Below, piece after piece: positions 1-37,900 of a stretch of 64,000 nucleotides of DNA (position 1 is its first letter; each line of letters begins with the position of its first letter). Both the position numbers and the translations under genes were made by a program. Below the pieces are notes generated by a model. The model worked only from the letters and a program-made list of their open reading frames with translations, made no database searches and had not been told where the DNA came from. Source of the stretch: Penicillus capitatus (lineage: Eukaryota; Plantae; Chlorophyta); the NCBI GenBank assembly GCA_965649825.1, contig OZ287695.1, forward strand, positions 186,001-250,000, read 5' to 3'.

Positions 1-2426
1 ACTTGGAGGCACCAGCGTTGACGAGAGTCTAGATTTCGCAGTCAATCATCACAAAAGACCCATGCCTGATTACCTGTGCTATTTCTAAATGGCCGATGGA
101 CGACGCTAAGTGCAGAGGAGTATAACCATCAATGGTTTTGGCTGACACATCTGCCCGATGCTCAAGAAGTGTCTGTGGAGCACAACTGCAGCTAACTCGG
201 GACAATGGCATTATGATTCACCTTTACTAAATCCAAGTGTTCATAACGGGATGCGTGGTGCAGGGGAGTCCATCCACGATCATTCGCGGCATTGACTTTT
301 GCGCCATTGCGGAGCAAAACCTTCAGACAGAACCCTTTAGTCAGGACATCTGCATAGTCAAGAGAACCTTTGCAGCATCAAGGCGTCCTTTATTTGCTGC
401 TTCATGCAAGGGAGTCCAACCAATGTTGTCAACCGCATTCACGTTGGCTCGGTGGTTTTCACACAGAAGCTGTGCGAAGAACACACGTTGATAGGCGACT
501 TAGAAACAAAGGAATCACGAACAGGTTACCTTCACAATGTCAGCATGGTCGAATCTAGAAGCAAAGAAGACAGGTGTCCGTCTATCGACATCCACTGCTT
601 CCACCCCTGCTCCATTTGCAATGAGAACCTGATGTGTCTCATCGCATAAGAGTGCTACTGGGACAACTTAATTCCTCACTTCTGCAACTTGATGGTGGCC
701 GAAACCAGCTGCTTTGTGCAAGGACGTCGCTCGAATTGAATCTACTGAATTTACGTTGGCATTCGATTCCAACAGAAACTAAACCACAAGGCATTAAGAT
801 GGCAATGTACTCTTGCTGGTTTGGTGGAAAAGCTTGTTAGCAGCATACCCTGGTAACGTGGATTGATCCTTCTACTGCTGCCACGATCAACGGCGTCGAC
901 TGAACGGCGTTTCTGCTATCAACTTTTGCTCCGTGTCGGACGAGAACCTTCACATCAGCATCTGACAGTTTAGAGATCATAACCATGCAAAAATTCCGAA
1001 GGCTCATACATCAGCGCAATCTAACGCATCGTATCCGGCTGCCCAATGGAGAAGAGTCGAGTCCCTGCTTAGTGGATATCCTGACAGATTTGGGTCGTGG
1101 TAGACGGATTCGACATTGAGGCCCTCTAGTAGAACAGCTTCTAGAGTCACGTCGTCGTTATCTCGCAGACAACGAATTGCTTCCTAAAAGCAGATCTTAG
1201 AAATCATTACCGGCCACTAAAGATTTACGCTCAGGAGCTGCTGGTCTGTGAATTGCTTCATACGTTCACGCTCTTGTGCTAGGCGATCCCGTCGATTTTC
1301 ATTCTGCCATCACCATAAAGTAGTGGATAATGAGATGGCGAGAGATGTCATCGGGAACCTTAATAATCTTCGAAATCGTGTCCCAATGATGTCCGACGCT
1401 AGCGTAGACACTTGGATCTTGTAATCTGCACTGTTTTCCAAACGAAGTGATGCCGACGACCAGATCCAGTTCTGGCTTCCCTGCATTGATGTCACCGTTC
1501 GGCGCATTAGGAATCAACAAAGGACCACCAGAATCGCCTATTTGACACATCATTCGTGAATTCAACAGAAGGAAAGTGCATTCACGAGGAATACCGAAGC
1601 ACGTGCTCTGGGACTGATTCGGGGAATTGGCACAGATCATGTGTTTTTTTGGATGGAAGTCCAATGCTTTTGCACACGTATTGATCGGGGCGGAGACTAA
1701 GTTGTTCGCCATCTGCAGATAACGTGGTGCTTCTTTGTCTGTCGGTTTCTGCACCCCCCATCCAACAGCTGTGAACTTTTGACCCGCTCCAAAAGGGGAG
1801 ACTTGTCGAGCGAATGAAGGCAATGGGACGTCGACTTCTCCGTCAAGTTCGAGGACGGCGATATCGTTGCCATTGCGACTATTTCCCGTCCAGGAGCGGT
1901 GTGGATGTTTCTTTGCAGTTTTGAATCTCTATTCACCAAACGCGTTGCATTTCAGTCATTTCGCGACATGTGCACTCACTCGAACCAAATGGAGTCTTTG
2001 TCGGTCATTAGCGTTGCAGTGGACCTCGGGGCTTTGGTCAACCAGCTGTGAACCGTTGCAGGTAAGACAGTGTGCCGCTGTGATCAACCATCTGCGGCGA
2101 ATCACCACACCAGTGCACTCGCACACCTTATTATCCACTGTCTCCGAAGTTAATAGACAGACATAAGGAAACCGGCTCCTCGGCACATTCACTCCCTGTC
2201 CGATATAAACAATGTGACTCACGGGCGTCACGTGCCTAACATGGGCTGCCGTTACCCCTCTGATTATCGGATGGCCTTCGTTGGAAATAGAATCCGTTCC
2301 CGTCCCTGCGAAAAATGACTGTCGCCGACGAGGACGGTTCATATGGTAAAGACCTGTGTCGCCGAGAGTCGCAACCCATCCGATGGCGAAGAGAACAAGC
2401 ACAGTTTTCGCGAAAGCGTCACCCAT
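1..2426 (-). CDS. Secreted trypsin-like (S1) serine protease fused to an ankyrin-repeat array (T1); 3' end runs off the window
   Basis: The signal peptide is [22 protein letters not shown], and the spliced protein has TAAHC, DIAVL and GDSGGP. A phase-0 linker exon ([10 protein letters not shown]...LLS) leads to a 174-nt N-cap exon (1183-1010), six ankyrin exons and the start of a terminal exon TLVNAGASK (28-1). All introns are GT-AG and in frame. Confidence 0.9.
74..947 (-). repeat. Six single-repeat ankyrin exons of T1
   Basis: Exons are 947-849, 778-680, 628-530, 469-368 (102 nt), 320-222 and 172-74; the other five are 99 nt. All are phase 0, e.g. [33 protein letters not shown]. Confidence 0.92.
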
Positions 2427-2889: not shown

Positions 2890-5288
2890 TCATCTTCTGT
2901 ATCGCTGCCTCTTGAAATTGAAGTAGAGATGTAGAATGCCACGTTCGAACGTGCATTTAAAGCCCTTCTTGTGCGAATACTCCCATTCCTTATTCACAAT
3001 CCTGAACGCCAAATCTTCATACGGAGGCCCTGCCTTGAATTTCAGCCAGCACGTTGCGCTGTCCTTAGCATCTGGATCATTCTCAATCTCGTAATACGGC
3101 GGCGTCTTCTTATCAATCAAATCTGGATAGAAGATATTAAACTTGTACCCCTGAACCACCTTGGGCGGCGGATTGTCGTGATCGTAATGCGTCTGATTAT
3201 ATTTGTTCCACTCATATCCCGTATGCACTCTACAAAGGCGGATCATGAGTATAGGATCAATTGTATCATATGTAGCGACTGGACCTGTTGAAGTATTTTG
3301 GTTTTCTCGGCCGGTACTTCTCGTGCCACCAGTAAACGTGACTCTCGAGCTCCACTTCGCCTCCAAAAGGCAGATACCCTTCGTCTGACCCCATATAAGA
3401 GATGGCAGCGGATTTCAGTCGATGAAACGTCGCCTCATCTGAGTACCAAACCTCTCCCCTTTCAATTTTGTAAGCGCAAAAGTCATTGCTGACCTGGATC
3501 TGTCGCCAACGGTGCCTCTGTAACCATCGAACAACTGGCCGCCGGCATCTGCACACAAACCACACGTGCATTGTATGACAACGACAATAAGGAGCTTCAC
3601 TTCTTTAGCGCGTTTCTTGAATGTTTCTGAGTACTGCAGCTGAACCTGAGTCAGGACAGAAGGCAACGGATTTCCAGATCACGTGACAGAAAGATCGAGT
3701 ATTACTTGGCGTCGGAGAAGGGCTATCTGGTCGTTGTCTTCCTCTTCTGCCACCACGTCTTTTCCATCGAAGGACGCGCACGGTTCCGGCGAAGGGCATT
3801 CTTCGTGGATCTCCGTTCCTCCGCTCTCGTTGTCCGACGAGGCGCATTCGGCAACCTCTTCTACATTTCTCTTGGCATCTATGTCTTCTTGCGTGTCGCA
3901 CAGAGGCGCCACATCGTCCAAGGTCGTCTTCTGTAATGTACTCTGGATGCTGCGAATCTTCGTCTTCAGCTTCTCAAGCTTCAAATTCTCCAGGACTCTC
4001 GTCCAGTAGTCTGGGTCGATGCTGTCAGAGGTTAGTAAATCGCCGATCTCGGCCTCCAACTGCACGAGTTCTGACAGTGACTTGCCTGGACGGCGGTGAG
4101 AACAATGCAAACGCGAATAGAGTGTGTCGGCGTTCTACCTGTCAGCATGTTCTGGATTTCGTCCTCGACGTAAAACTGCCGCTCTCTGGTGAAGCCAGAA
4201 GGAAGCTGGAGGCCATCCTGCTCCTCTTTCGTCTCCTGTTTCTTGGCAAGATTCAATTCATACTCGCAGATCGACTCCATACAGGACCAATACTCCACGT
4301 GCGACGCATCCTGGCAGTCCAGGGACTGCAGACGCAATCAACGACCGTTTATACCAATGATAAGTGGCAGACAGTTTGAGCAGTACTTTAAATTCTTGGA
4401 TTTCTGTCATGAGAGCATTCAGCTCATCCACATTCATCTTCTGCAGAATCTTGTATGCCGGTTCCATCTGTCCCCAGCACAGTTCCGGCAACAACGCACG
4501 CACCAACGCATCGATAGGTCGCATCCTGTCCGATTCGATACGGATACGGGAACTGGCCAATGCCTAGATCAACCGTCCATTGTGCACGAGAACGCAGGGG
4601 CAGGTGGACGCACTTGCTGAAGGAGGAAGTCTTCTTCCTTCTCGATGGCACTGGCCGCTTCGGCAGCCAACCGTGCACGTTCAATCATACTCTGTACACA
4701 TAGCCGATCGTCAGAATGGCGGCTGTGTGCACCGATGGATCCTTGCCAGCTCCTCTTGCTGCCGGGCGCGTTCCGTTTCGCGTTCCTCTCGACTCCTCTT
4801 TGCTTTCTCGATCTCGTCCTGCCTCACATCCACTGTCAAAAGCGAAGCGCTGCCGAAGGGGCACCAGTCGTTGATGTTGACGTTCGCGTTCTGCTCTGGC
4901 GTCCAAGTCCTTGACCGAGACACCACTCGCGAGCTGCTTTTCGATCTTCTTATTCCAGATGAAGCTGAAAGACAAGCATATGCCGCTTCCGAAGCAGCAG
5001 ACAGCGTAAGAGAGCACCGTTCGTGGAGGTTCGGATCCTGAAAGCGATTGTCTGCCACTCCGTATCCCTCTGTCGCCACGTGATGCTTCTTCAGGTGCTT
5101 CACGACCTTCTTACTCTGAGCACAGCACCGAATGCCAGGTGAATGCTTCAGACGGCGACGCTCACGAGCTTCTCAACTCTCCTTTTGCGTAAGGACGCGT
5201 CATCTCTGTCCTCAGACTCCGCCGAAGGGCTGCGCCTTCGATGACGATGCGAACGGTGACGACGCGAACTCGATTCGCTCTTTGGCAT
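2890..5288 (-). CDS. CACTIN: Cactin (spliceosome-associated), multi-exon
   Basis: The C-terminal cactin domain reads GYEWNKYNQTHYDHDNPPPKVVQGYKFNIFYPDLIDK...GPPYEDLAFRIVNKEWEYSHKKGFKCTFERGILHLYFNFKRQRYRR. The N-terminus has RS-rich and FIWNKKIEK segments. The start at 5288 (MPKSESSSRRH) is inferred. Confidence 0.93.
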
Positions 5289-6591: not shown

Positions 6592-8024
6592 ATGACTTTC
6601 GTTGGCGTTTCTCCTCGTATCATCTGTCTGCTCTGTCTGGCTACCCTTGGCCTCGCCTTGGGTCAGACATGCAACCCTGAAGAAAACCCAACCTGTACAC
6701 AGGACGAGACCGACATCGGTGATCCATCCCATGGCCTCCGTCGCATCCCGTGTAACGCCCATGCTGTTGTCTAGGCGATGCGTACAACTCCGGGCAAGGA
6801 AGCAGGAAACTGCTCCAAGCGTCCAGGGGCACCGTCGCAGCGTCCCAGTCGCTCGTTCCCGTCCTCAACAACCGACGGTCGCTGCTCGAGGCCATGTGTT
6901 CGGAGACGGATAACAGCCCTGATGCGGTAAGGCGACGGACGCCTTGTGTGGTCTGGCCTCTAAATGTGGGACGCGTTTCAGGTTGTTCAATGCACCAATG
7001 CGGTGCGGTCCAGTCCACGTTCCTTTAACTACCCATGCGGGAGTATCAATATGAACGGCGGATTGGGACCACTGTCGATGAACGAAGACCTCATGGTAGC
7101 CGCAGAAAAGCATTCGAAAGACAATGCCAATATCGGCGACCTGACACACAAAGGCTCAGACGGTTCTTGGGCCAGCACCAGGTAACGCATCATCACCAGG
7201 CATTCCACCTGGCGGCAAAACGCGTCTGACACTGCTGTGGTGCAAACAGAGTGAAGCGTGCGGGTTATGCTGCTGGAATGGTGCGCGAGAACATTGCCTA
7301 CGGCTATATGTCCGCCAGATCCGTCGTGTTTGGTTGGATGTGCTCTTCTGGCCATCGCAAGAACATCATGAGCTGTGACACCGCCGATATCGGTGTCGGT
7401 CTTGCTCAAGGATACAACGGGCGTTACTACCACACTCAGGTCTTTGCCTGTCCCCAGGGACAGCAATGCACTTGCAGTGGCGGTGGCGGCTCAGAAGAGG
7501 AAGAAGAAGAAGAGAAACCCGTTGCCAGTCCAGTAGAGGGAGGCGGTCACCAACCGACACCCTACAAAGAACACCCTTACGATCCCTACCAGCAGGTCCC
7601 TTACCAAGAATACCCTTACGACCCCTACCAGCAGATCCCTTACAAGAAGACACACAAGAAGAAGCCACACGGTGGGGTCTACTACTACGATTACCCTCTC
7701 TACCAGGGACACGGAAGCGGACCCTCGCACTCTGGCAGCGGGCCCTCGCACTCTGGAAGCGGATCTACGCACTCCGGAGAAGAGGAAGAGGAGAAAGCCA
7801 CAGCGTCGCCGATGTTCCAAGATCCGCACATGATGTACGGTGAGGGACAAGGCGGACACGGAGGTCCAGTCGGAGATCCGTACGGCACGAAACCGGCCAA
7901 GTACAAAGGTGGTCCATACATTCACATGAGTGGTGGACACCCGATGTCTGAAGCCGGCTATTATGTCTCAATGTCTACGTTGCCGGGCCATGGCGCACCC
8001 AGTGGACATACTGAAGACGATTGA
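6592..8024 (+). CDS. Secreted CAP/SCP (PR-1/YkwD-like) domain protein with a Glu-, Tyr/Pro- and His/Gly/Ser-rich tail
   Basis: The signal peptide is MTFVGVSPRIICLLCLATLGLALG. CAP motifs are AAEKHSKD, LTHKGSDGS, ENIAYG and GWMCSSGHRKNIM. Three introns were spliced by hand. Confidence 0.85.
7560..7775 (+). repeat. In-frame tandem repeats in the CAP protein tail
   Basis: A 39-nt unit (PYKEHPYDPYQQV / PYQEYPYDPYQQI / PYKK) spans 7560-7649. A 21-nt unit (GSGPSHS x2, GSGSTHS) spans 7713-7775. Confidence 0.85.
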
Positions 8025-8477: not shown

Positions 8478-9526
8478 ATGCTGCGACCGCGTATCCTTGT
8501 CTCAAACGATGACGGTATCCGAGCTCCGGGTCTCCAGTCCTTAGTGCGGGAGCTCCACGCCTGTGGCCACTACGACGTTCGCGTTGGGGCGCCCGAAACC
8601 GAACGCTCTGGCTCCTCGCACGCCGTCACCTCAAGCGTCCAGGCGACGCGTTACTCAGACGGCACGGCAGTCGGTCTGCCGTCGGATATCGTCTGCTATG
8701 CAGCGAGCGGGTACCCAACCGACGCTGTCCGCCTCGCTTTTCAGTCGGGTAGATACCCTCTGCTCCATCATATGGGTGGTCCCCATGTCATCTCGCCTAG
8801 ATATCTTTGGACATGAGTGGGTGCCAGATGTGGTGGTCTCGGGGATGAACCGAGGACTCAATGCAGGCCGCGGCACGTTGATATCGGGTACCGTCGCCGC
8901 CGCACGGGAAGGAATTTTTCAGGGTGCCAAAGCGCTGGCCGTCTCGATGCATTCCTTCTCCTCTCGTATGCAAGATCCGAAGGACTACACACGTGCCGCT
9001 CGCGATCTCCTGCCGATTCTCCACTGGTTTGTCGCCGAACAGAAATGGCCATCGGGCGTCATCCTCAACGTCAACATCCCATACGAGAACAACCCAGGCA
9101 AGATCTCTCGATGGATGGGCGTCTGAGGGGTGGGCTCGAATGCAGGGGCGGTATCTGCTTGTTTGAAAGTCGTGCCACAAGGGCAGTCGATGCTACGGTA
9201 CCAATCGTCGACGTCACAGGCAGTCGTTCCGGCACAGAAGACGCAGGGCGAGACGAGGATGTATAAATTCCGTTGGCACGTGGCCGTCGATCCGCACGCC
9301 ACTCCCGAAAACGATGACCTCATTGCTGTCCTGAATAAGTAAGGGCCTGCTGTGCCACTGTGCCGTCTGCCTGTCTTCTCACTCCTTTTCCTCTAGTTGT
9401 GTGACGCTGACGCCTATTCCAGCCGTCGGTCCAGGCGATGATGTGACAGCTGCAATGAAGTTGCTGTACAGTTGGGCAGTCACACATCGGCATCCGTGTC
9501 TCCAATGGAGTCCATTGCCCAACTGA
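8478..9526 (+). CDS. surE: SurE-family 5'/3'-nucleotidase/phosphatase
   Basis: Motifs are RILVSNDDGIRAPGL, APETERSGSSHA, DVVVSGMNRGLNAG, SGTVAAARE, LNVNIP and CVTLTP. Three introns, one of them GC-AG (9098-9145). Confidence 0.9.
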
Positions 9527-9566: not shown

Positions 9567-10376
9567 TTATGAATCGAACTGCTGACGCAGTAACATTTCT
9601 TCTTCGGATTTCCATGTCGAATGCGAACTCTGCCCCTTTTCGCGTTTTGCCTTCTCCTTGTCTCGCTGCAATCGCGTCTTTCTTGGCAGCATCGCCCCGC
9701 CTCCCTTTGTCAGAAATGCATCGACTGGCATCGCTTTCGACGATTCCTTCTCCGATTTCTCCTGTCCCAAGACGCCCGTCACATCATCTCTCGCCATCGA
9801 ACAGTCCTGTACTTTGGCAGTTGGAGGAGGGAGTGTCGGATCTCTGGGCGTCTCGTATGTCAGAGCTTTGGCAGTGACGACAGTCGGGCATCTGAAACAG
9901 AGCGAAGGCATATCCGGAGCGAGGAGATAGGCTACAAAGCGTACAGCTTCTTCTCAGCTTCTTCATTGGCGGCGACGAGTTTTCGTTTGCGTGGCTTCAC
10001 GACGTGGACAGGACGAATGGCCTCCGGGTCCAAGAAAGCAGGAGGTCCCTCCACCTATTCGCGCATCGTCGCAGTAAAGGAGGACGCTCTGTCCCTATGC
10101 AGCTCTAGCTACCTCTTCGAAAGCGTCAAGGGCCGAGAGCATCGGCGGCGGTCCTTCTTTCTCGTCTGCTGTTACCGACGGTCCTTCCGCTTCGCTCTCC
10201 TCCTCAGACGACGACGCTTCCGAGCTCGAGGAAGACACGTCTCCGGCGCCCGTTGTCGTCGCATCTGTATCAGAGACGGTCGAGTTGACGGCTGATGGGG
10301 GAGTTGGCGCGGACCGAAGAAACTTGTCGTTGTGTTTTTGGTCGTCATTTCGCCAAGACAAACGCAGTCCTGTCAT
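9567..10376 (-). CDS. Uncharacterised protein resembling the plant C1orf52/DUF4660-like family
   Basis: An acidic Ser/Glu run is followed by LSALDAFEEVEGPPAFL and the C-terminus KREKGQSSHSTWKSEEEMLLRQQFDS. The family is recalled from motif memory and the start codon is uncertain. Confidence 0.55.
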
Positions 10377-12609: not shown

Positions 12610-14517
12610 ATGGCCACTGCCGTCACAGAAAGACAAAGGAGAGGGCCAAATGCCGAAAACACGCTGAAGCCTTTGGCCGTTTCCAGTCTGACGACACAGC
12701 ACCTCGACGATATCAATCTTTTGCTGACCGTCGAGCAGGAAGCGCACAACAGAGTCACGCAACGCAAAATTCAAGTCCTCGCGGAAGAGACGGTCCGCGA
12801 TTTAAAAATTCACCTGCGCAAAAAGGAAGTCTTCACCAATCAGCACTGCCTTGTTTTTGGCCATCGAGAACTCCTCGAAGATGAGACCATTGGCCACGTA
12901 CGTACACACACCCATACCTAACCTATCTGTCACATCGTATGCCTGTTTGCTGTTCAGATAGCGGCGGAAGCGGGTGGCGGAAATTACTTACAGGTTTTGG
13001 CGAAGCTCTCAGATATCGGACGTCTTGAAGTGACGACAGACAAACAGAAGCGCACCCTGAAGAACGATCCTATCTCTTCTGTGCCGTCGCGCTGCGATCC
13101 GATGATATCGTCGATAGTGCCTTCTTCTCCTCTGCTCCTCCGCGGTCGAGTGATGGAGACAGGCAAAGAAATCTTGACAGCAATGTGTGCTGGATCGGAT
13201 AAACCGTCGCCGGCATCCGAATCGCTTCCTGGTGATCCGGTCGTCCATCTCGTGATTCGCAAGTCTTCGAAAGTGCACTGGCATCATCTGAAAGAGGGAT
13301 TCGATTTGCGCATCACCGCCGACGCTACGGTTGATGACGTGAAACAGAGATTGGCCGAAGTGGCCGAAGGCTTTGAGGCGAAAGATCACGCCGTGGTCAA
13401 GGCGGGGCATACGTTACAGCCTGGCATGTCGCTGTCGGAACTGGGCGTCGAGAAAGGCGATGTGTTGGAGATTGTCGAAGTGCCTCTGTGTCTCGAAGAG
13501 TATCGAGATCCGATGTCGCCGACGCGGATGAGTCCACGAGTGGAGATGCCGGAGGAGTGGCAAAAAGCAAAGGACGCTTTGGCACAGGGTATATTGCCCA
13601 AGCTGACGTCTCAAGGGACGGGTGGGTCTTATTTCATTTCAGCTATGGAGGGGAAGAATCTGGCCGTCTTTAAGCCAGAAGATGAGGAGCCCCGTGCACC
13701 GAATAATCCAAAAGGACATCGCCCGTCCTTTGCCGGCGATGGACTGCGCAAGGGAGTGCGTCCGGGAGAGGGGGCAACACGAGAAGTGATTGCGTTCACG
13801 TTAGATCACGAGCATTTCTCTGGAGTGCCGCCAACGACGATGGCATCGTTGAGCAGCAACCCCAGTCATGCTTCGCATCGAAAGGTCGGCAGCTTCCAAC
13901 AGTTTGTACAGCACGATGTCGATTGCGAAGAGATGGGTCCGTCCAACTTCCCCGTCCACGAAGTGCATAAAATCTGTGTGCTCGATATCCGTCTCGGCAA
14001 CACAGACCGCAACGCTGGCAATATTCTGGCCAGCAAGAAACAGGGAGAATGGATTTTGACGCCCATTGATCATGGCTACTGTCTCCCCGACAGTTTCGAA
14101 GACATTACTTTCGAGTGGATGTACTGGCCACAAGCAAAAGTGCCGTTCCGTCCGGAGACGCAGGCATACATCGCCGGTCTCGATGCGGAAGAGGATTTGG
14201 CATTGCTGGAGCGTTCGGGATTGTATCTTCGCCCCGACTGCGTTCGAGTCTTTCGCGTCTGCACGATGTTGTTGAAGAAATCGCTGTCCCGTGGAATGAC
14301 ACCTTACGATCTGGGATGCATGATGTGCCGCCAAGCACTATCGATGTCTCCATTGGAGAAGCTCCATAAAGGCGCCATGAAGCTGACACTTGGTCAAATG
14401 TATGGAGGCAGCTTTACGAGTGGCTCAGGGCACTTGGAAATGGACGAGGAGCTCTATCTCAAAACGATGAGCGATGTGATTGATCAATACTTAGATGAAA
14501 CAGCTGATGTACCGTAA
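12610..14517 (+). CDS. PI4KG: Type II phosphatidylinositol 4-kinase gamma with N-terminal ubiquitin-like domains
   Basis: Two Ubl-like segments precede GTGGSYF, AVFKPEDEEP, GEGATREV, KVGSFQQFV, VLDIRLGNTDRNAGNIL, PIDHGYCLP and FEWMYWPQA. Confidence 0.93.
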
Positions 14518-19413: not shown

Positions 19414-22091
19414 TCATTCATACACGAATACATCAGATGTTGGCCAAAACGATTCCTTTCTGAAAACGAATCCTGTCGTGCCTTTGCTATTCATGCGGCA
19501 CATCTTATCGATGATCTTGGCCGTCGTGTTCGGACCACAGTAGAAGACGCCCACCATCGGTTCACACGGAAAATCGGTTTTGACCCTTTCGAACAAGGCG
19601 TTCCAGTCCACGCGTCCAAAGCGTGTCATCATACGCGACATCCTGTCAGATCTCGATGCCTCGCTGCTCTCATACTGTGCCAGACAGAGCAGCATCGTTC
19701 GGATGTCGTTGGCGCCTTCGATCCCCTCGACGTGGATCTGGATATCGAGCACGAGATCTTCATCTCGATGCAGGATCTCCTCCAGTGTGCATTGAAACCA
19801 CGATGCCTCGCCTCGCGATTTCACCGTCCAATAGACGTAAACCTTTGCAACGCGGGTAGGCATCACGTATGGATTGCAGTAGCCACATCTGCGACAGGCA
19901 CAACGCTTGAGGGTGTCCAACTGTTTCTTCACGACTGAGAGAAAAGGAGCGATGCCGATGCCGGAGCCGATGAGGACGATGACTCGGTGGGCGGCATAGT
20001 CCTGAGCGGGAGAGCCAAATGGACCGTGTATACAGACAGACACATCGAACACCTTATCGTCCATCGTCTGTCCACGGGACCATCGCGATGAGATGGAACG
20101 CGAACTGTCGACGGGCGAATCCTTCTCCGTGCGATTCTTGGCCAACTCGTATAACGCTGTTGTCCAGTCGCCTGCCTTGCGCACGAGAACACCGAGATCT
20201 GTCTCATTAGGACAAGAGGCCAGCATGAACGGATGCCACTCGAAGCGAGAGATCTCGGGGCAACGGATGTAGATGAACTGACCAGGCGTGAATGAAAATC
20301 CCTTGGGACGGCGAAAGCAAAGACGGACGATCTCGCTGCCGATGAACTGAGCATCGACGACCTGTTGACTGTCTGTGCCGTGCTTAGCTCGGACGATGCG
20401 TTCCAGGACATAGATCAAGAGTGGAACGGACACCCAGAGCCAGAAGTCACTGCGTTCCTGCTCGCTGCGATCGTCCGGAAGATTTGGGAGGGGGTGGATG
20501 AGAAGCATCATGTAGAACACGATCAGCAGATGATGCGAATACCAGAAGTTGTTAAAGTCGTTTAGACATCGTCCCATGGCCCCCAGGCATCCTGATCGAT
20601 GACTTACATCGTTTGAGGCACGGAACATCGAGAGCTTCTTTGGGTAATCGAAAGCAAACAATGCGACCAATGTGTAGATCGTGATGAGCACGACGCCAGT
20701 GATCGATGCAGGAGTCATCAGAATGTCCTTCAGTTGCGGTTGCTGTTCTCCGTCGCAGAAGACACTCGGCGTTTCTCCATTGGCCGATAGCCAGATCTTC
20801 ATCTCGTCGTGTGTGACTCCCGTCACGTCACTCCCGTCACGGTCTTGGGGAAAGGCATAGCACCAGGCCTCTCTATACTTTGGGTCTTGAAAGCGGAAGA
20901 TGTGAATGATGTGACAGATGGTGTGTATCCAAGACAGCATGAACCCCGCTCGCCCGAGATACCTAACCCACAAAAGATCACACAGTTATCGACTGAAGGA
21001 CGAGGGAGGGACTTGTGGAGTTCAATGGCGTCGTCGAAGGGGAAGAGATGCTTCAGAATCGTGTCTCTCAATGTCGTCATGAGATTCCTCGAGACGGGCA
21101 GGAGAATGAGCATAAAGGTTGCCTTCATTGCTTCTGCACAGCCCTTTGCCACTGGAAACGTCCAGCCAAAGAGTCTGCGTCTGCGCGCCTCTCTGCATTC
21201 TTTCGGATCGTGTTCGGCCATGGCGGCGCTTAAAACCATGTAACGCGCCTCCTCAACTGTCATGCCAACCTGTCCAGTCTCTTCAGCGATGCGGAGGAGG
21301 TCCTGACGGGAGTATCCACTCAAAGGATCCGGCAGATCCATCTCCACGTCGTCACAGCTGCCCGCGCATTTAAAGAACATGTAGGCGAAGAGGTTGACAT
21401 GCAAGAGCAGGAGGAAGGTGCATATGAATGTCCATTGCGGATGGTTAACGATCCAGGAGACGGCCTTGCGCATCCACCTGAATCTCTTCCTCATTGGCGA
21501 TCGAGTCAACACCGACTCCTTTGCTCCGAGACGACCGAACGTCCAATCTTGCGAGAGGCTGGGGTATGTTTGCAATACCGTACGGAATGTTCGGTAGTGG
21601 ATGGCTGACGAGGCGCTGTCTGCTTCAAACAGCTCGAGCAAGGTGGCCACATAATATGTCCTCTCTACTTCGGTCATCTGTCGGCCTCCCTCTTCAGTCG
21701 TGGCCGAGAGAAGCGTCTCGAGGTCTGCCTTGGTGATGGCGCCGTCGCCGTCCACGTCGAAGATGCTAAAGAGAAATCGCATGCGCTCGTCTTCATCGTT
21801 GTCATGCGAGGAGCGAAGTTTGCGGTCTGCATTGACGTAGTCGTCGAGTGTAACTTCTCCAGCACTGTTACTGTCCAACACATCGAAGACCTTGCGTGCG
21901 AGCAATACATTTTCGACACCAGTGAGCCGCACGAATTCTGGAAAGGTCGCCTTGTCTCTGCCATTCGTCTCTTGAAGAAATGCGACGGTTACTGGTTCAA
22001 GGTCACACGAAGCATCGCGGCGTTGTCTGAGATCTAGTTGAATAGACATTGGATAGCGGAGGCACCAAGGCCTTGAGTGATGTTGATGCAC
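19414..22091 (-). CDS. RBOH: EF-hand NADPH oxidase (RBOH/NOX5-like)
   Basis: Two EF-hands (DSNSAGEVTLDDY, DVDGDGAITKADL), ferric-reductase TM segments with heme His residues, the FAD motif FEWHPF, and NADPH motifs GSGIGIAPF, VGVFYCGP and FRKESF. One 50-nt intron near 20.96-21.01 kb joins the two long ORFs. Confidence 0.95.
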
Positions 22092-23883: not shown

Positions 23884-26800
23884 ATGCAAGTTCGAGCTCC
23901 AGACGAAGGGCCCAGTAGTGGAGGGCCTTCCGCACCGACAGTTGGCGACGGCGGTCAATCCATGACCCCGCAAGCGGCTGCTGCGGAACGTCAAGACCCA
24001 AAGGTCCTGCGTGCTGTCGCGAAGAAGTACGCCATCGACAGCACAAAAACGCTTGTCGAGGCCTACAACGCGGCGACGGATAACGAACGCGCCGTCTTGC
24101 TTGGATGGTTGCTCAGATACGACAGACGCAACAAAGAATGTCTGAGCGGCGAATCTGTTCTCGACTATGCAGAATTGGCCAGAATTACGCCCAGTTCCAT
24201 ACGAGATAAAGGCGTCCTGAAGAACTTGGTCTGTTCGCTCTGTTCGTGTGTTCATCCGGGAAAATTTCTCGAAGAGAACGTGGCAGCTGCCCTTTTCAAA
24301 GCGCTTGTACACGTCGATCCTTCCGTATCCGGCGGAGTTGCGCAGCTATTAGTCATGGCAAGGAAGCTCTTGAGCAGCCTCTCTCCAGAACCGAGGCTCA
24401 CAAGAGACAACTTTGCAGAGCATGAAGCGACATTTCTTGCTCTCCTTCAGACTCTTTTGCTGCTTTCAGAAATCAGTCAGAACGGCGTCTACGAAAAAGA
24501 GAAGCAAGAACTTCGTCAAGCCGTTGTTGAAAAAGAGAGAGCGATGGAGCTCTCATGCAAGTACTACCCAGTGAGTTTCCATTTCAAGACTCTGCGACAA
24601 GCAGTGGAACGCCTCGGAACCAAAGATACGTCTTCGCGTCATGCACATGCAATGCAAAATGTCGGTTGCGTATTGTGCGGATTTCTGTATCTTTTTCACT
24701 GTGTCGGAAATCTAGCAAGATGCGACATCGATCCTGAGGCTCTTCAAGATGCGTACATAAAGGCTCGAGTTGCCATTGCCAACATAGCGGTCTGGAGGAA
24801 ACCGTGGTTTGACACGTTCAAGAACTTGATGATAGCTAGACAAGAGGCATCAAAGGACGAGATAAAGCTTGAACTTTTTGAAACCAATTTCAGTGCTGCA
24901 ATTGAGCTCCAAGAGAATACGAAAGATAAAGAAGACTCAAAGGCGTTGAGATACGGAATCGTTCGAGAGTTGGGCACACTCGCAATTGATGGTCTGTCAG
25001 AAAACGCCCGAAACGCAGCCACGAAGAAGCTGGTGGATCTAGCAACACAGCAGATTGTCGACGAAGGATGGACTAGTGATAGCCATGTTCTAATCGCTCT
25101 CTTGGATGTCATGTGTGAGTTGCATGGTATCGACCAACACAACGAAGACGTCAAGAATGCGCTCCTCGTCTTACACCAGTTTTGCGAGGGTTCTGCCAAG
25201 AAAGCATCAGAGGAATGGATGGACGGAAACAGTATCGAAAACAAGCTTCAAGAACGAAACCCGCAAAGAGCTGCCGTAGAACACGAGAATTTGTGCATCA
25301 AGATCGGAAGAGACGTGGGGTACATTCCTCTCGCTATCATGAACTCGAAGGGAGGAGAGTTGAAGAAAAGATACATGCGCGAAGATTTCGCGAAAGTAAT
25401 ACACAAGAAAGCACATACTAGTCGACGAAGGTGCCTTGTTTTGTAGGTGACGTCCTTGTTCGAAGAAGGATCCTCCAAGCACGTCAAGGATATGAAGCAT
25501 CATGTTGTCATATCTGAAGAAATCATTGAAGAGAGAAGAATCGAAACAAAGGAAGGAACAGAGAGAAGGTCCTCAAACCGTAGAAAGGATCAAGCAGACG
25601 AATACTACGAAAAGAAAACAAGAGTCACAAAACCCATTGCTCTGGACGACCTGTTTAAGCGAAGATCTCTCAAACCCGGAGATCCGGAAAGCGAAGTTCG
25701 AAGGGTGCTTCTCTACGGTAACCCCGGCTCCGGTAAGACGTGCATCACGAAAGTCGTCGCGCACAAATGGGCCTTGGGGGAAACGGCACAGGTCTTCAAA
25801 GCAGTTTACGTGGTGCCGGTGAGAGTTCTCAATGGTGCTGAGTTCGGAGGACAAAGATTCACAAGACTTGAAGGGGTAATCTTGCAAACATGCTTCGGCG
25901 GGGGTCAGCTTGCCTTTGAGTACGATGACCTGATATCCCAAGTCGAAGATGACCTGGATGATCCTTCAACGCTGCTCATGCTTGACGGACTGGACGAGGC
26001 AAATGACCACGCGAGAGAACTGATTTCCACCGTATGGAAGCGCTCATGCAAAGTTCTGTTGCTGTCTCGTCCGTACAACATGAGAAACGTAGAGACACGC
26101 GTCGACATCCAAGTTGAGTGTCTCGGATTCAACGACGAGCAATTACGAGACTACATAACAAGCGAACTGTCCGAGGACGAGGCTCCGAAACTCATTCACT
26201 CTCTCGAAAACGCAACAGCCATGTGGGAGATGGCACACATACCGGTGACGGCACACATTCTGTGTTCCTTGTCGAAGGAACGCGGTGGCGCGATCGCAGA
26301 AGAAGGGAAAAGAGTGAGCACGTTTTAAATTTACAACGACATGGCGAACTACGTCTGGAAAAGATTCGAAAATAGGCCAATGGCAAACAACTTACAGAAA
26401 AGGGAACTCTTTAGAGATCTGGAGAAGATCGCCTTCGAATCGCTTCGGAAAGGACTGATTCTCATCCACGAAAGATTTGTCATGCAACACGCAACGTCGA
26501 AGAATGCGGCTCGGACTTTCAAAGAGAGTGGACTCCTCTTGCTCGTGTTGGAGGGCCAAGAATATCAGTTTCCTCATTTGACCTTTCACGAATATTTCGC
26601 CGGAAGATACATCGCGAGAATCTTGAAGCAAAGTAGATTGGACGAGAAGACGAGAGTGCTCGATTTCATTCGCCGGGGAAAGTACGATGAGAAGCATAAC
26701 CTCACGCTGACGTTCGCAATGCATGCATTCGCGGAAGGTCGAAGCAAGCAAGCGTTAGAAGAGTTGCTTTCGATAATGGACGAAAAACCCGTCGAGGTCC

Positions 26801-28164
26801 TCGGCATACGACACATTTTTCTCAGAATGCGAGTTCTTGAGGCTACGTTAGAAGAGGCAGAAGCGGAGGAGGAGATAGAGGTTATAGCAAAAGACGAACA
26901 GGCAATCGAGATCGCCGAAAAAGCTCGTCAAATACTTGAGAGCACAATCGACCATGTTCTAATCCGCGAAATTATGGTCAAGGAGATCCAACAACTGCCC
27001 TGCATTCTGAAAGAATTCTCTAAACTTCTCGATGAGACCGTTAACGGAATAATGTACATGCTCGCATGTTCGCAACACTTAGAATGGAAGGAAATGGCGA
27101 AGATCACGGATATTTTGAAGCTCGCGAAGCACTCTCCGAAGCACAGTCATAAAGTGATCAGATTCATCTTGCAACTAGCCAAACACGTCGATAGTTGGTG
27201 CGACAAAGACGAATGCATCAGAAGGTTCAAGTGGGTCGCAGCATATGTGTCACATAACGCCGAAAAACTTTTGCCGACGATAACAAAAGGGTGTGGCGAC
27301 GAAAACCAGCGCGTGAATGAAGCAGCGAAAGAAGCCATCCCTCAAATTGTCGCGGCGGCTCCGCATTTCGCCAAACAACTTTTGCCGGAAATGACGAAGA
27401 AGTGCGACGACGAAGACTGGTTTGTGTGTGTAGCAGCGATAGAAGTCATCGGCCGAATTGTCGCGGCGGCTCCGCATTTCGCCAAAGAACTTTTGCCGGT
27501 GATGGTGAAGAAGTGCGAGGACGAAGACGAGTTCTTGCGTCTTTTAGCGATAGAAGCCATCGGCCAAATTGTCGCGGAGGCTCCGCATTTCACCAAAGAA
27601 CTCTTGCCGGTGATGACGAAGAAGTGCGACGACGATCACAACAGCGTGCGTGCGACGGCGATGGAAGTCGTCGACAAGATTGTCGCGGCGTCTCCGCATT
27701 TCGCAAAAGAACTCTTTCCGGTGATGATAAAGAGGTGCGACGACGAAGACTGGAGCATACGTGAAGCAGCGATAGAAGCCATCGGCCAAATTGTCGCGGT
27801 GGATCCGCAGCACGCCGGAGAGCTCATGCCGACGATGGCTACGGGGTGCGACGACGAAGACGACGAGGTGCGCTATGCCGCAAGAAGGGCACTTGAGCGT
27901 GTAAGCGCCGAAGAAGCCATTTCTTCGGTAATATCGTCTCCTTCTAATAACAAGGGCGGGTTTTTATTCTTCTTCGTGCAAAACTCATTCACGTTAGATC
28001 CCCCTGCAAAATCTAAAACGGTTCCCTTTATCTTGCACACAACTTCTTCACAAACGATTGGAAAATGGGACAAGGAAGCTATCGATGTGTTTATCGAGAA
28101 GTTGAGACAAGAATGCGATGAAGAGTTTCCCGGGCTTCTAGAGAACATTGGTATCAAAGAATAG
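23884..28164 (+). CDS. NLR-like STAND protein: helical N-terminal domain, NACHT NTPase and HEAT repeats; interrupted by an in-frame TAA at 26326-26328
   Basis: Walker A is GNPGSGKT and Walker B is LLMLDGLDE, followed by LLLSRP, IPVTAHILC and QFPHLTFHEYFAG. It has six 37-aa HEAT repeats and one 51-nt intron (25396-25446). Confidence 0.88.
27226..27891 (+). repeat. Six tandem 111-nt HEAT repeats
   Basis: The consensus is IGQIVAAAPHFAKELLPVMxKKCDDEDxxVRxxAIEA, with a DNA-level period of 111 nt (e.g. 27343 vs 27454). Confidence 0.92.
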
Positions 28165-29141: not shown

Positions 29142-30506
29142 ATGGGAGGCAGATTGGCGAGCGTGATTCTCTTGATCCTCTCACTCTTCTGGCGCCCAGC
29201 ATTCAGTGACACAGGTATCTGTATGGCAGATAGCGTTTTCTGGCTAACAATATGTCTCCCTTACAGGGTCTGCCGGGAAATCGGACGGGCCGGACCAGTA
29301 TGCGAACATTCGCAGAGTAAGATGGCCGTGTTCTGCGGATTCTGCATGCTGAGGTATATCTTGTCTGCATGGACAGGGAGTGACTGTCAGCGGAGAACGC
29401 TTTCCGTACGTGTGCTACGTGTCCGTCACCAAACGAACCTTCAGTCCTCCTGTTTCTTCGGGGCATTACTGTGCTGGAGTGCTGTACCGCAGAAAATGGG
29501 TGATCACCGTGGCGCACTGCGTCTACGAGGTCGATGGAATCGTCGTCAAGCCCACACCGACTGTCTACTGCGGCTTCAACGACCGTTACAGAAAGTACAC
29601 AGCCCAAGTGAGCACTGATACGCGTGGAAGCGGACTGAGGTCGGCGGTTCTTGGTGGCAGTCTGCCAATGCGAAGAGAACACATCTGCACGATTCTTGGA
29701 CGGGAGACAGGCTTGACGGCTACGACATTGCCGTGGTCGAGCTGGAGAAAGAGATAGATCTCGACGGGCCCGAGGTCGCCGAACGGGACGTCGAGTTCAA
29801 CGACGATCAGAAGTTCGCGACGGTTGCATGGGGAAGAGTCTCGGACACCAAGAGGGCTCGCTATCTGCAGATGGCCGACAATCTCGTCTACGTCTCGCCG
29901 GAAGAGTGCAGAGAGCACTACGACGATCTCTCCACAGAGTCGCCTTGGATGTGCGCAAAATCGGCAGATCAGGAGCAGGACAGCTGTCGCGGTCGAACAC
30001 GCAGATCCGATTCCTTGTGCGGATGCAAACCCCCGCGTTGGTCGTTGCAGGTGACTGTGGAGGTCCACTGCTGATTCCTCACATGCCAGGGGGCGTCATC
30101 AAAGCGGGAGATCCGAAACGTGACTGGGTCGTCGGCATCAAAACCTACGGGATCATAGAATGCGACGGGAAGAATCCGGACGTCTACACCAGAATCGCTC
30201 CCTTTTGGGGCTGGATTTCGGGCATCATCGAAAAGGTGACGCATCTGACCCTCCAAATGACTCCGCGCTCGATGCCGTTCTTTCATGCAGGATGAATCTT
30301 CTGCGAAGGAGAGGCATGGAACGTCAGGACGTGAGGACGCACTTCCGCAGACTGTCGAAGACGGCGTGTTCTTCACTGTAAGTCGCCGGCAAGATGAGTG
30401 AGCTGTTTATACAAGAGGCGCGTGTGGTTAGGAAACAGTCAAGTCCGCGGAGAGAGATGATGGAACGAGATCGGATGTGGTTCGTGCGGACGGTTCGCAT
30501 TTCTAG
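29142..30506 (+). CDS. Secreted trypsin-fold protein T2 with catalytic Ser replaced by Cys (GDCGGP)
   Basis: The signal peptide is MGGRLASVILLILSLFWRPAFS, with TVAHC, DGYDIAVVEL and spliced QDSCRG-DCGGP (TGT at 30056-30058). A short acidic tail ends at TAG 30504-30506. Confidence 0.88.
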
Positions 30507-32264: not shown

Positions 32265-33509
32265 ATGTCTCACAGAATGCGAAGGACACTAGCAAGAGCG
32301 ACGCTGGTGATCTTTACAGTCTTACGGTTCACGATCCTCGCAAGCGCAGTTCAGCGTAAGATCTCACTCAGTGGACGGCAAAGACAACGCTTCGTGCAGG
32401 AATGGAAACTGTTTCTGAGTCGACGGACCAGATCCCGAACATAGGCGGCGTAAAGCGACCGACGATAGACGAACCCCTGCGGTTACGATATGTATTGTGT
32501 GTTGCGCAGGGCGACGATGCGCCGCCGAACCGTTTTCCTTACGTGTGCTATCTGTCCATTGCGAGAGAGACTCCAGATGATCCCGCATCCGATCCCAAGA
32601 GAACATACTGCACCGGAATTCTGTTTCTGAAGGAATGGGCGATCACGGCGGCGCACTGCGTCGATATGGAGACAGATGAAAAGCCGGTCGGGAGAACCCC
32701 CACAGTCTGGTGTAACTTGCCCGAACGCAGTAAACGGCACGAGATACAAGTTAGGATTCATGGGCTGGAGTGGAGCGCATCGACCTGCGGCATTCTGTCT
32801 GCAGGGTGTGAGCACAGCAGCCATATACTTACACGAAAAATGGAGTGGGGATAGCCACGATGGCTATGACATCGCCGTGCTGAAGCTCGATGAGGCTTTC
32901 GATCTTCCAGTGCCCACTTTTGTTCACGAGACTCGCCATTTCGACGAGAGGCGAGAGTTTACTGCCGTCGGCTGGGGACGGGACTCGAACGACAGAAAGC
33001 CATCGCGCCTGCAGATGGCAAATAGCTTGAGGTATCTGTCGAACGATGTGTGTGGCAAACGACTCCATTTCGAAGACAGTCTCCCCATCATCTGCGAGCA
33101 ATCGCCACATCATGCTCAGGACAGCTGCAAAGGTTGTTTACTCCATGAGCGTGTCTTCATCGAGAGAAGCGTTTCGCTGTTTTGGCAGGGGACTCTGGAA
33201 GTCCATTGCTCATTCCTGATAAGGCAAAAGGAAGAATGAGCTTAGGAAACCCAGAACACGATGTCATCGTTGGCATTAAGTCGTTTGGAAAGAAGAGCTG
33301 CGACGGCAAAGGTCCAGATGCTTATGCAAGCGTCGGTCCTGTTTGGGATTGGATTATAGATACCGTCCACGAGGTTCGACATTCGATGATCCTTCATGAC
33401 ACTGTCCTCTCATTGCGATGCCTTGGTTCAGAAACAAACTCCCGCAAGGACGAACGGGGAGAGTTTTCCACCAGAGGACAGCGAAGACCTTACCAGAGTC
33501 CGAAAGTAG
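32265..33509 (+). CDS. Secreted trypsin-like serine protease T3
   Basis: A hydrophobic N-terminus is followed by PNIGGG, RFPYVC, TAAHC, DGYDIAVLKL and QDSCKG-DSGSP. Intron positions are shared with the paralogues. Confidence 0.88.
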
Positions 33510-34924: not shown

Positions 34925-37900
34925 ATGGATTCTCCCCATAGAAGTTGTCGCAGCCGACTGGTGTCGAGGAAAACGAACAACGGAATTGTCAAAGCGATAC
35001 TCCTCGTCTTTACCGTCACGTGGCCTACGGCTTACGCCGGTGTCGGTTTTCGCTTAGGCGGCACAGGTAACATCTTCTTCTTCGAAGATAGCGCTGACGG
35101 TGACGCTCAGAGAGAGGGAAAACGTCTCCCAAAAACTATCGCCCAAACATTCTAGCGGCACGTGCCCGACTCGACATCAAATCCTCCTGATTGACGTGTA
35201 CTGACTGCGCTGTCCAGGGAATGGATGTGACCGAAGGAAGATTTCCTTACGTGTGTGATTTGACTTATCTGACAGCTGATGAAGAATACGTCTGTACTGG
35301 AATTCTGTTTCGTCAGAGGTGGGTGATTACGGCCGCACATTGCGTCGAACCAGACGGAGAACAGCCCATCGGACAAACCCCTACCGTACGATGCGGCTTC
35401 AGCGACCTCTCCGAACAAGACTTGGCACCAGTAAGCGTTCATCCGTCGTGAGCGTGTCAAGACGCCAAAATGGCACCTGTTTCAGACACGAAGCACCGTA
35501 TCGACTTTTGCACACGAATCGCGTTTGCAGAATATGCACCATGACTATGACATAGCCGTGCTCGAACTGGACGATCCCATCAACCTTGCCGAGCCTATCT
35601 TAGCCCGTCAAGATTACGACTTCGACACGAGTCAAAACTTCACAGCTGTCGGCCGGGGAAAAACGGAAACTGGCCAATATCCGAATATCTTGCAGATGGC
35701 GACTGGAATGTCTTATATGGCGCCGACGAAATGCAGCAAACGTCTGGAATATGAAATCAAGGATGGAATGCTTTGTGCTAAGTCACTGGACCGTAAGCAG
35801 GGAATTTGTGACGGTCAGTCAGCGCCTCATCCGTCTTCTTCTCTCTAAACATACTGGTGGACCTTTTAGGAGATTCTGGAGGTCCCTTGCTTATTCCGGA
35901 CAGCACGAATGGCAATATGAGCAATGGAAATCCAAGACGAGATCGAATCGTCGGCATCGCCTCGTTTACTCGGGGAGTATGCTCGGGTAAGAATCCAACT
36001 GCTTACACGAGCATCGGGTACTTTTTGCCCTGGATTACGGCCGTCATCGATCAGGTTGTCAGCTCGAATGGTCATGACATCTGTTTTCCGAAACGTACGT
36101 GTTCGCGTCGCAGAATGTCTATCCGAGCAGTGCACGCAAACGAAGTCTCGATCAAGAAGAGCAAAGCGCGACAAACGTCTATGACAGGACGCAGATCGAG
36201 GTGAGGCATGCGTATCCAAAACCGGACGAAAAACAAGACGCTTCTGTCACCGAAGGATGCTATCACTCTCATAATAGAAGACGACGACGTGGGACTGAAG
36301 AAAGTCCTTAAAAAGGGTCTCTATGTCGACGCTGTCTATCACAACGCCGAGCTGTCAGGGTATCCGATGGGGCCAGAGTCAACACTGATCCACTGGACGG
36401 CGGCATACGATGCGAAGAAATGTGCAAAGGTGTGTCGCAAAACAACGACCGTCGCCGTTGGAAGCGCTTCCCATAATTGAGCTGTCTTGTTATATCGCGA
36501 ACCTTCCTCGCACTCTGCTATGTTCTTCTCAGGTTCTTGTAAAACACGGCGCGGGAGTGGACCGCGTGACCGCTGACGGAATAACGCCCCTGCACGTCGC
36601 AGCTTTTTTCGGATCTGTTTCCGTGGCAAAGGTTGGTACAACCATTGAAGAAATAATAAAGAATTCCTTTGCCGACAAGATTATGAGGGAATGCCTTTGT
36701 TAGGTCCTTATTGAGTTCGAGGCTAGCGTCAATGCAGCAGACGCGATTGGGGCAACTCCACTGCATACAGCAGTAGAGTACGGCAACGACAGTGTGGTCA
36801 AGGTATCGATGACGCCTTGCTTCAGACCTCCGCCTCACTACAAAGACGTGAAGGTGCTCGTTGAAAATGGAGCTGACGTCGACGCCGTTGACGACGGCAA
36901 GTGGACGGCGTTGCATCATGCTGTGTACTACGACCGCCTCGAGATCGCGCAGGTCGGTATTGGCCATTGGCGGGCGCCCTGCCTGCGCTGCGTACATCTC
37001 CGACACTTCTTCCATAGATGCTTGTCGACAGCGGTGCAGACATTGCTGCGCGAACGAATCAACGCTGGACTGCGGCGCATGTGGCCTCGCGATATGGACG
37101 TACTGACATCACGAGGGTGATCCTTTGTTCGCTTTTGGTTTCTTGATTACGAAAGTCATCCGACAGGTTCTACTCGACAAAGGTGCCGACGTCAAAGCCG
37201 TGACAGAGTCTGGACGGACGCCTCTGCATCTCGCGTCGTTCGGTGGGCATCTTAACACAGCAAAGGTGCATCTACAATGCGCGTAGCCCATCTCTGGTTG
37301 CAGTGGTGAATTCGACAGGTGTTGTTAAAGAACGGTGCAGAGGTGAACGTTGCTGACGCCATTGGACGGACGCCACTTCACGAAGCAGCACGTAGCGGTC
37401 ATTTTGCAACCGCTGAGGTCGCCGTCTTTCTCTTTCGCTTTGTGGAGTTCGTCTGTGTTTAGATCTTGGTGCGTGAAGGGGCAGATATCGACCGAGTCGA
37501 CAACGAATTATGGACGGCTCTGCTTTTTGCATCCCGTTACGGAAACGTCAAGATCGTCGAGGTCTCCTTTGCCACTTTTTGTGACTGTGAATGATCAGAT
37601 GACGACAACAGATGCTGATACGTAAGGGGGCAGACGTTGATGTCATACGGACAGATGGATCTACTGCGCTTTGCATGGCATCAATTTTCGGATACAGCGA
37701 AATTGTGAACGTAATACTTGCTTCGTCTTATTTTTGTGTTACGAGGATCATTCAACAGGCCTTAGTAGAAGAGGGTGCTGCCGTCGATGTTGTTCTAAAA
37801 AACAGCGGCACCCCACTCCACTTTGCATCATTTAACGGACACCTGGAGATAGCGAAGGTGATCGACGTTGTGCTCTTTCTTCTCCGGCAGTAGAACGCAT

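Follow-up and report, generated by a model that had tools for sequence, protein, structure and literature searches.

Can a secreted serine protease carry, within the same polypeptide, an array of ankyrin repeats, a module that is overwhelmingly cytosolic? The question is raised by the first gene (gene 1, 1-2426, minus strand) of a 64,000-nucleotide stretch from the green alga Penicillus capitatus (GenBank assembly GCA_965649825.1, contig OZ287695.1, positions 186,001 to 250,000 of the forward strand; hereafter, “the window”). In a preliminary description of this DNA, the gene was read as a signal peptide, an S1 protease with an intact His/Asp/Ser triad, a charged linker, and an ankyrin array in one spliced frame. 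In the present analysis, we sought to determine whether the two halves are indeed one gene, in which compartment the array is likely to sit, and what it may do there. Our analysis confirms that protease and array form a single spliced frame and places gene 1 in a multigene family with relatives in other bryopsidalean algae. We consider it moderately probable that the members of this family are secretory-pathway S1A proteases in which the ankyrin solenoid serves as a protein-binding exosite or anchor.

The spliced models of the window genes were built by hand from GT/GC-AG sites, with introns placed by hand and then checked against paralogues; the window as a whole is eukaryotic DNA with short GT/GC-AG introns. 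In the gene 1 model, the ATG at 2426 begins a single open frame that spans 12 exons on the minus strand (2426-1980, 1928-1595, 1537-1359, 1303-1229, 1183-1010, 947-849, 778-680, 628-530, 469-368, 320-222, 172-74, and 28-1) and encodes a signal peptide, an S1A protease, a linker, and eight ankyrin repeats. The signal-peptide-like segment (residues 1-22; 2361-2426) is the only one at which the Kyte-Doolittle 19-residue mean peaks (1.81). Between this hydrophobic N-terminus and the trypsin-family domain lies a pro-region of about 50 residues, which is poorly conserved in the family. The protease domain itself (residues 76-320; 1359-2201, with introns at 1979-1929 and 1594-1538) is followed by a charged linker of 25 residues on a phase 0-0 exon of its own (1229-1303) and by an N-cap exon of 58 residues (1010-1183). 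The N-cap is an atypical first repeat whose loop is long, and it is conserved among the paralogues and in proteins from Caulerpa. Six regular repeats come next (74-947), each on one phase-0 exon of 99 or 102 nt, and the first part of the last exon (1-28) begins the C-cap repeat and the cysteine tail, which ends in GKTPLQVVCSSSDSNCSDRTRTDLQQLLT before the stop codon. The preliminary description was right about the frame and about the junction of protease, linker, and array (1361-1183, in agreement with our exon ends at 1359, 1303-1229, and 1183), but its gene is cut by the window edge: the last exon extends another 107 nt, giving a product of 646 aa with a TAG stop in flanking DNA of the same contig (12531-12533 of a flanking sequence that we refer to as L002).

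The case for one gene is made largely at the junction. The introns around the linker exon measure 45-59 nt, which leaves no space for a 3′ untranslated region, a spacer, and a promoter, whereas genes in the surrounding cluster are spaced 1.2-1.9 kb apart. The linker exon is open, in phase 0, and 75-87 nt long in three paralogues; paralogues that consist of the protease only terminate within or just after the equivalent exon; and the ankyrin part lacks a separate start codon and signal. Over all models, 55 of 60 introns would break the frame if retained, and every one ends in AG (55 with GT donors, five with GC). The same fusion was predicted independently in the annotations of Bryopsis sp. KO-2023, Ostreobium quekettii, and Caulerpa lentillifera, where at least 16 proteins hold both domains, and three short contigs contain the fusion as an uninterrupted, full-length open reading frame (ORF; L003, 2574 nt; L004, 2705 nt; L006, 2526 nt). 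These contigs are probably transcripts, because genomic copies elsewhere are intron-rich (one Bryopsis gene occupies 9082 nt for 560 residues, and the Ostreobium models are 8-10 kb long). The alternative, that two adjacent genes have been joined only apparently by the modelling, can point to the hand-built nature of every window model and to the poor conservation of linker exons among paralogues. Set against the findings above, we give it almost no credence, and the separate ankyrin gene for which the preliminary description had allowed is not supported by the short junction introns or by the phase-0 linker exon. As a separate observation, the GC donors (approximately at 38161, 38606, and 39783 in the window and at 15030 and 15938 in L002, mostly in an AG↓GCA context) amount to 8% of introns, well above the roughly 1% that is usual in eukaryotes.

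The protease half has the hallmarks of an S1A enzyme. Pfam Trypsin (PF00089) matches gene 1 with an E-value of 1.1e-29 (104.3 bits) and a second fusion gene in the window, gene 2, with 3.9e-33 (115.6 bits), and two protease-only neighbours, paralogues A and B, score 103.7 and 106.1 bits (cut-off, 20.6 bits). Alignment to solved S1A proteases gives the catalytic triad as H119/D171/S263 in gene 1 (codons 2072-2070, 1865-1863, and 1532-1530, minus strand) and H101/D153/S243 in gene 2, with the residues in canonical TAAHC, DIAVLEL, and GDSGGP motifs. Gly193, whose backbone NH contributes to the oxyanion hole, is present together with Asp194. Across local paralogues and database relatives, His57 and Asp102 are invariant, and Ser195 is retained except in paralogue A. 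Six cysteines (pairs 42-58, 168-182, and 191-220) occupy the positions seen in activated protein C, with little or no variation among 10-16 family members; by sequence, the protease domains of the family are predicted to form the three canonical disulfide pairs. Residue 189, in the S1 pocket, is Asp, Ser, or Gly locally and Ala, Thr, Gln, or Asp in relatives.

The predicted structure agrees with this assignment. An AlphaFold2 model of gene 1 residues 1-416 has a mean predicted local distance difference test (pLDDT) score of 78.1; most 10-residue blocks of the protease domain score 77-96, and three loops dip to 54-69. Foldseek matches the model to enteropeptidase, elastase, chymase, and kallikrein, with target-normalised template modelling scores of 0.82-0.87 and E about 1e-16. 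At the N-terminus, the model shows residues 2-21 as a helix and the pro-region (residues 22-73) as disordered. The charged linker lies within one helix (residues 308-335; block-mean pLDDT 83-92) that continues the C-terminal helix of the protease. From the aligned residues and the model, the gene 1 protease looks catalytically competent.

Does the ankyrin array leave the cytosol together with the protease? The six local paralogues all have a signal-like N-terminus, as does every complete homologue examined, and paralogues and orthologues show n/h/c layouts with small residues at -3/-1 (TWPTAYA↓G, RPAFS↓D, STQTAA↓R, and LQVACQ↓D). Past residue 40, no segment reaches the level of a membrane span (all Kyte-Doolittle 19-residue means < 1.62), so the array must share the extracytosolic compartment of the protease, predicted to be the lumen of the endoplasmic reticulum (ER). 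This is in line with the preliminary description, in which the array was taken to be apparently extracellular. The repeats contain 0.33% Cys over 3928 residues in database members, and the 15 regular repeats (495 aa) of a third fusion gene, in L002, contain none, the sole Cys before its tail being in the N-cap; this comparison is only suggestive, as four unrelated ankyrin proteins span 0.15% to 3.6% Cys. In the C-terminal tail, on the other hand, a Cys pair or quartet is kept throughout the family. Pro, Ser, and Thr are abundant in the connectors of the Bryopsis and Ostreobium proteins, a composition like that of extracellular glycoproteins of algae. In one Ostreobium protein, a Cys-rich insert is weakly PAN-like, with a match that stays below the Pfam threshold (E 0.0018).

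Taken together, the signal segment, the disulfide cysteines, the Cys-poor repeats, and the lack of a later span make it likely that the array is extracytosolic, whether in the medium, the wall, or the vacuole. If instead the N-terminal hydrophobic segment were not a functional ER signal, protease and array would remain in the cytosol or in an organelle. This would suit the usual location of ankyrin repeats, and the gene 1 product has a short hydrophobic core with an Arg-rich stretch (RPRRR) behind it. However, the six S1A disulfide cysteines and the Cys tail are all conserved, the layouts ending in AYA↓G, AFS↓D, TAA↓R, and ACQ↓D are classical for signals, and the connectors of the orthologues are of the type found in algal extracellular glycoproteins. 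A further point against a cytosolic or organellar location is that about 40% of S1 genes were predicted to be secreted in the Ostreobium genome paper (10.1101/2020.07.21.211367). We therefore regard a protein that is not exported as quite improbable.

The architecture of gene 1 recurs on the opposite strand in gene 2 (34925-39969, plus strand; 29 exons, about 1157 aa), which encodes a signal peptide, an S1A protease (35218-36054; His codon 35338-35340, Asp 35549-35551, Ser 35875-35877), a linker exon (36114-36200), and 24 ankyrin repeats (36256-39969; an N-cap exon, 22 regular repeats, and a C-cap) followed by a Cys tail. Its intron 1 allows five frame-preserving placements, none of them preferable. 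The third fusion gene, just outside the window in L002, encodes 942 aa with 17 repeats and a tail as in genes 1 and 2, and L002 also carries the start of one further protease gene. The cluster consists of at least six tandem S1 genes, three of which are fused to ankyrin arrays and two of which, within the window, are protease-only. Intron positions and phases are common to all members: the shared introns fall before the HxxW segment, in phase 1 within the Gly193 codon, and after the C-terminal helix, in addition to the linker exon. The paralogues are about 40-45% identical at the protein level, and repeats 1-8 run collinearly in the 17- and 24-repeat genes, with 48-67% identity against a background of 38-41%. 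The N-cap exon and the Cys tail are shared as well, and together with the matching intron positions and phases and the collinear repeats they identify genes 1 and 2 as tandem paralogues of one ancestral fusion. The recurrence noted in the preliminary description is real as a shared plan, but it is not an independent one.

The remaining members of the cluster show some variation. Paralogue A (29142-30401, plus strand; signal peptide and S1 protease only, 326 aa) reads GDCGGP at the active site: the catalytic Ser195 is changed to Cys (TGT, in the exon at 30051-30235), with His57 and Asp102 retained, and the product may either use a thiol nucleophile or have lost activity as a pseudo-protease. 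Paralogue B (32265-33509, plus strand; signal peptide and S1 protease only, 319 aa) reads GDSGSP, and the placement of its intron 1 is provisional. Also provisional are the N-terminal exons of the L002 fusion gene, in which the modelled intron 2 (13989-14019) has only 31 nt, compared with 43-103 nt elsewhere. In the ankyrin regions of the three fusion genes (36256-39969 and 1-1183 in the window; 15085-17790 in L002), one repeat corresponds to exactly one 99-nt phase-0 exon, cut at the same repeat position. With such a layout, an array could gain or lose repeats and stay in frame.

To place the family, we begin with the host. A PI4K-gamma ORF in the window, which is also recorded on ENA metagenome contig ERZ25074695:ctg339180_25x_l (121,767 nt), is most similar to Caulerpa lentillifera (66% and 63%), then to Bryopsis sp. 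(53%) and Ostreobium (49%), and then to green algae and land plants; on this single marker, the host appears nearer to Caulerpa than to Bryopsis or Ostreobium. An origin of the DNA from an oomycete or other pathogen was rejected on the evidence of this ORF and of other genes of the contig, which are closest to Caulerpa, Bryopsis, and Ostreobium. For the fusion itself, a first sequence search returned three Bryopsis proteins and one Ostreobium protein with both domains, at about 30% identity, the remainder being generic trypsins. A profile search with the protease domain found protease-only members in Bryopsis, Ostreobium, and Caulerpa, with generic animal and bacterial trypsins below them; two of the Caulerpa models stop inside the N-cap repeat and are probably truncated. 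An exhaustive HMMER search over 1.84 billion representatives gave about 18 further clusters with protease, ankyrin repeats, and tail.

The named fusion matches, which come from sequence and profile searches rather than from an architecture search, are all bryopsidalean. They comprise at least nine proteins of Bryopsis sp. KO-2023 (BSKO_04609, BSKO_04685, BSKO_04697, BSKO_04699, BSKO_04714, BSKO_04781, BSKO_04794, BSKO_04812, and BSKO_05102, all encoded on one 7.4-Mb contig), four of Ostreobium quekettii (CAD7703444, CAD7703549, CAD7699406, and CAD7695175), and three of Caulerpa lentillifera (g4815, g5122, and g8885). As far as these searches reach, the family appears to be confined to the Bryopsidales. 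Its proteins share with those of the window the order of signal, pro-region, S1A domain, connector, ankyrin repeats, and Cys tail, as well as the family protease motifs, an inserted loop, and VGIxSFG, and the Bryopsis genes are likewise clustered. The tail follows a signature ([TS]P.D.[IV]C, 2-10 residues, C, then L..LL), often with four Cys in Bryopsis and Ostreobium. Gene 1, gene 2, and the L002 fusion carry all of the family features: the signal, the S1A domain with its RFPY, LQMA, and LLIP-loop motifs, the array, and the tail.

The two sets also differ in several respects. Protease-domain identity between the other bryopsidalean proteins and those of the window is 29-36%; the connectors of Bryopsis and Ostreobium are Pro/Ser-rich, whereas those of the window are charged; and the arrays have about 3-12 repeats, compared with up to 24 in the window. 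The Bryopsis members have canonical activation sites (R↓VVGG, R↓IAGG, and R↓IVGG), and their exons contain several repeats each, in contrast to one here (in BSKO_04781, one exon holds about 3.5 repeats and the tail). A side observation concerns this last gene. On Bryopsis contig BSYQ01000004.1 (3001-12082 of our sequence L005), exons of BSKO_04781 occur in two sets separated by about 5.2 kb (residues 54-125 at 3478-3693 and 8653-8865; residues 311-340 at 4906-4995 and 10078-10167), and the annotated gene may span two tandem, near-identical copies.

What might the array bind? Pfam Ank (PF00023) matches gene 1 with an E-value of 3.5e-52 and gene 2 with 5e-190. The 43 regular units that we excised have the consensus xLLxxGADVDAxxxxGxTPLHxAxxxGxLxIAK, and their most variable positions are the canonical binding-surface positions of the fold. 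In the collinear repeats 1-8 of two paralogues, the predicted surface positions are 48% identical, compared with 14% in non-collinear pairs, and the framework positions are 62% identical, compared with 46%. Aromatic residues and Arg are frequent on the shared surfaces (e.g., WHYY, NQW.RY, and EW.RY), and the conservation of these surfaces suggests a defined protein ligand that has been retained since the duplication. Family members differ, on the other hand, in repeat number (8, 17, and 24), in their distal repeats, and in the S1-pocket residue 189.

These features are consistent with the following sequence of events. The whole polypeptide would enter the ER lumen, with the cell exterior, the wall, or the vacuole as its destination, and removal of the pro-region would activate the enzyme. 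The ankyrin solenoid would then act as an exosite or anchor that tethers the protease to a particular protein partner or delivers substrates to it, and the paralogues would differ in the targets they cut and bind, as the S1-pocket residue and the repeat number suggest. The recognition-plus-effector function proposed in the preliminary description is plausible, with indirect support from the conserved surface positions of paralogous repeats. More speculatively, the family might serve the wound response or defence of a giant, walled single cell, in which the contents of vacuole and cytoplasm and the surrounding seawater come together upon injury; such a role would fit the confinement to giant coenocytes, the tandem expansion, and the diversification of the family.

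Several points weigh against the exosite-or-anchor reading and the role built upon it. The expected activation sites of the window paralogues (GVTV, GTTV, GMDV, and IGQG) depart from the canonical I/V-x-G-G: the position reads Y↓IGQG in gene 1 and falls on G-x-x-V at an exon boundary in the other local paralogues, with the upstream exon of gene 2 being ambiguous. Activation in these proteins may work differently from the canonical mode. Variable surface positions are a general property of ankyrin repeats and are not specific evidence of recognition. The status of the short contigs as transcripts is unproven, as a poly(A) tail was looked for on the Logan (L003 and L004) and JGI contigs and none was found; the green-algal poly(A) signal TGTAA, which follows only two of five stop codons, is uninformative. 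Finally, the tie to wounding and defence takes lineage restriction and tandem expansion as its entire basis and is speculative.

Other roles can be envisaged for an exported fusion. The proteins could be external digestive or nutrient-scavenging proteases, with an array that merely tethers them to the wall or multimerises them and has no specific target. The presence of protease-only paralogues in the same cluster would fit, as would the 159-189 S1/trypsin-domain genes that the Ostreobium genome paper interpreted as external protein degradation (10.1101/2020.07.21.211367) and the appearance of peptidases among the duplicated classes of Caulerpa and Ostreobium in a 2025 bryopsidalean phylogenomics preprint. 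However, the fusion also occurs in free-living Bryopsis and Caulerpa, which are not carbonate borers, and the retention of individual repeat identity and surface residues between paralogues favours a defined protein ligand. The binding of wall polysaccharides, moreover, is not known as an established activity of ankyrin repeats. We judge the digestive role to be unlikely. The array could also act on its own protease: it might inhibit the enzyme intramolecularly, assist its folding, or serve as a scaffold that activation releases or rearranges. The predicted connector of gene 1, a long rigid helix continuous with the C-terminal helix of the protease, would fix the geometry that such an arrangement needs, and the atypical activation-site residues of the window paralogues point in the same direction. 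Yet one fixed contact is hard to reconcile with arrays of 3-4 to 24 repeats and with connectors that range from a charged helix to a long Pro-rich segment, and protease-only paralogues exist; we find this explanation improbable.

The exosite-or-anchor reading can also be carried further: the solenoid could be a true extracytosolic recognition module, a rarity for this fold, and the family a proteolytic system of giant coenocytic algae that is triggered by damage or intruders. In that case, the protease would be kept in reserve in the vacuole or wall or in the extracellular space, and only a breach of the cell would bring it together with the cytoplasmic, microbial, or grazer proteins to which its ankyrin surface binds, with paralogues of distinct S1 pockets and arrays covering distinct targets. 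We consider this doubtful, though not far-fetched. If true, such a system would be a convergent counterpart of the animal clotting and immune cascades that uses another binding fold.

Comparison with known systems shows partial likenesses. The modular S1A proteases of animals (clip-domain proteases, C1r/C1s/MASP, and coagulation factors) are secreted zymogens with diversified paralogues and with non-catalytic protein-binding modules that direct them to partners, a plan that the window proteins would resemble, but their modules are N-terminal and disulfide-rich (clip, CUB, EGF, kringle, apple, Gla), unlike the C-terminal ankyrin solenoid here. A Pfam search of genes 1 and 2 at E up to 0.001 found no match to clip, CUB, LDLa, EGF, or lectin modules, and the host is a bryopsidalean green alga, so the animal immune cascades by which the preliminary description had framed the protein do not apply. 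HtrA/DegP combines an extracytosolic chymotrypsin-fold protease with a C-terminal module for substrate capture or regulation, but only the fold is shared: it belongs to another S1 subfamily (S1C), has no zymogen or disulfide pattern, carries PDZ rather than ankyrin domains, and is oligomeric. Ankyrin proteins that are exported include bacterial Ank effectors and spider latrotoxins. The exported effectors of the oomycete ANK family likewise provide a precedent for ankyrin arrays that leave the producing cell (PMC11139960). Secreted ankyrin effectors differ in lacking a protease domain and in acting in or on the cells of another organism, whereas the window proteins carry a protease and belong to a photosynthetic algal host.

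The closest published context is the S1 expansion in Ostreobium (10.1101/2020.07.21.211367), which concerns the same superfamily and lineage, has many members predicted to be secreted, and includes the Ostreobium fusions in its gene set. That paper counted S1 domains and proposed external digestion, and the word “ankyrin” does not occur in it. In the Bryopsis and Halimeda genome papers, the words “trypsin,” “protease,” “peptidase,” and “ankyrin” are all absent. In the literature searched, we found no description of the fusion family, and database entries list its proteins as hypothetical or as “Peptidase S1 domain-containing.” What emerges, as documented from sequence, is an S1A protease with an unprecedented accessory module in a compartment that would be unusual for that module.

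Other genes of the window deserve mention as neighbours of the cluster. About 1 kb upstream of the protease paralogues, three successive long ORFs (23884-28164, plus strand) encode an N-terminal region with no annotation, an NTPase of the NACHT type (1.5e-13 in Pfam, above the threshold), and a set of HEAT repeats, i.e., a protein of the STAND (signal transduction ATPases with numerous domains) class that resembles nucleotide-binding leucine-rich repeat receptors, with HEAT repeats replacing the leucine-rich repeats. An NADPH oxidase-like gene (19414-22091, minus strand) has ferric reductase, FAD, and NAD domains and, upstream of them and read by eye only, what may be an EF-hand-like region. 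The gene at 7251-8024 (plus strand) encodes a CAP/PR-1-like protein whose repetitive tail is rich in Gly, Pro, and Tyr. The Rboh class is among the wound-related families in the Halimeda genome paper. The linkage of the NADPH oxidase-like and CAP/PR-1-like genes to the protease cluster may be a coincidence.

Ankyrin repeats count among the most common protein-binding folds and are nearly always cytosolic. If the array is extracytosolic, this conserved and expanded family would show that the ankyrin fold can serve as a binding module outside the cytosol, and its structure of one repeat per exon, all in phase 0, illustrates how such arrays grow and shrink. Siphonous algae are giant single cells that need fast wound sealing and defence without cell boundaries. 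The family offers testable candidates for these processes, alongside the lectins that have been studied so far.

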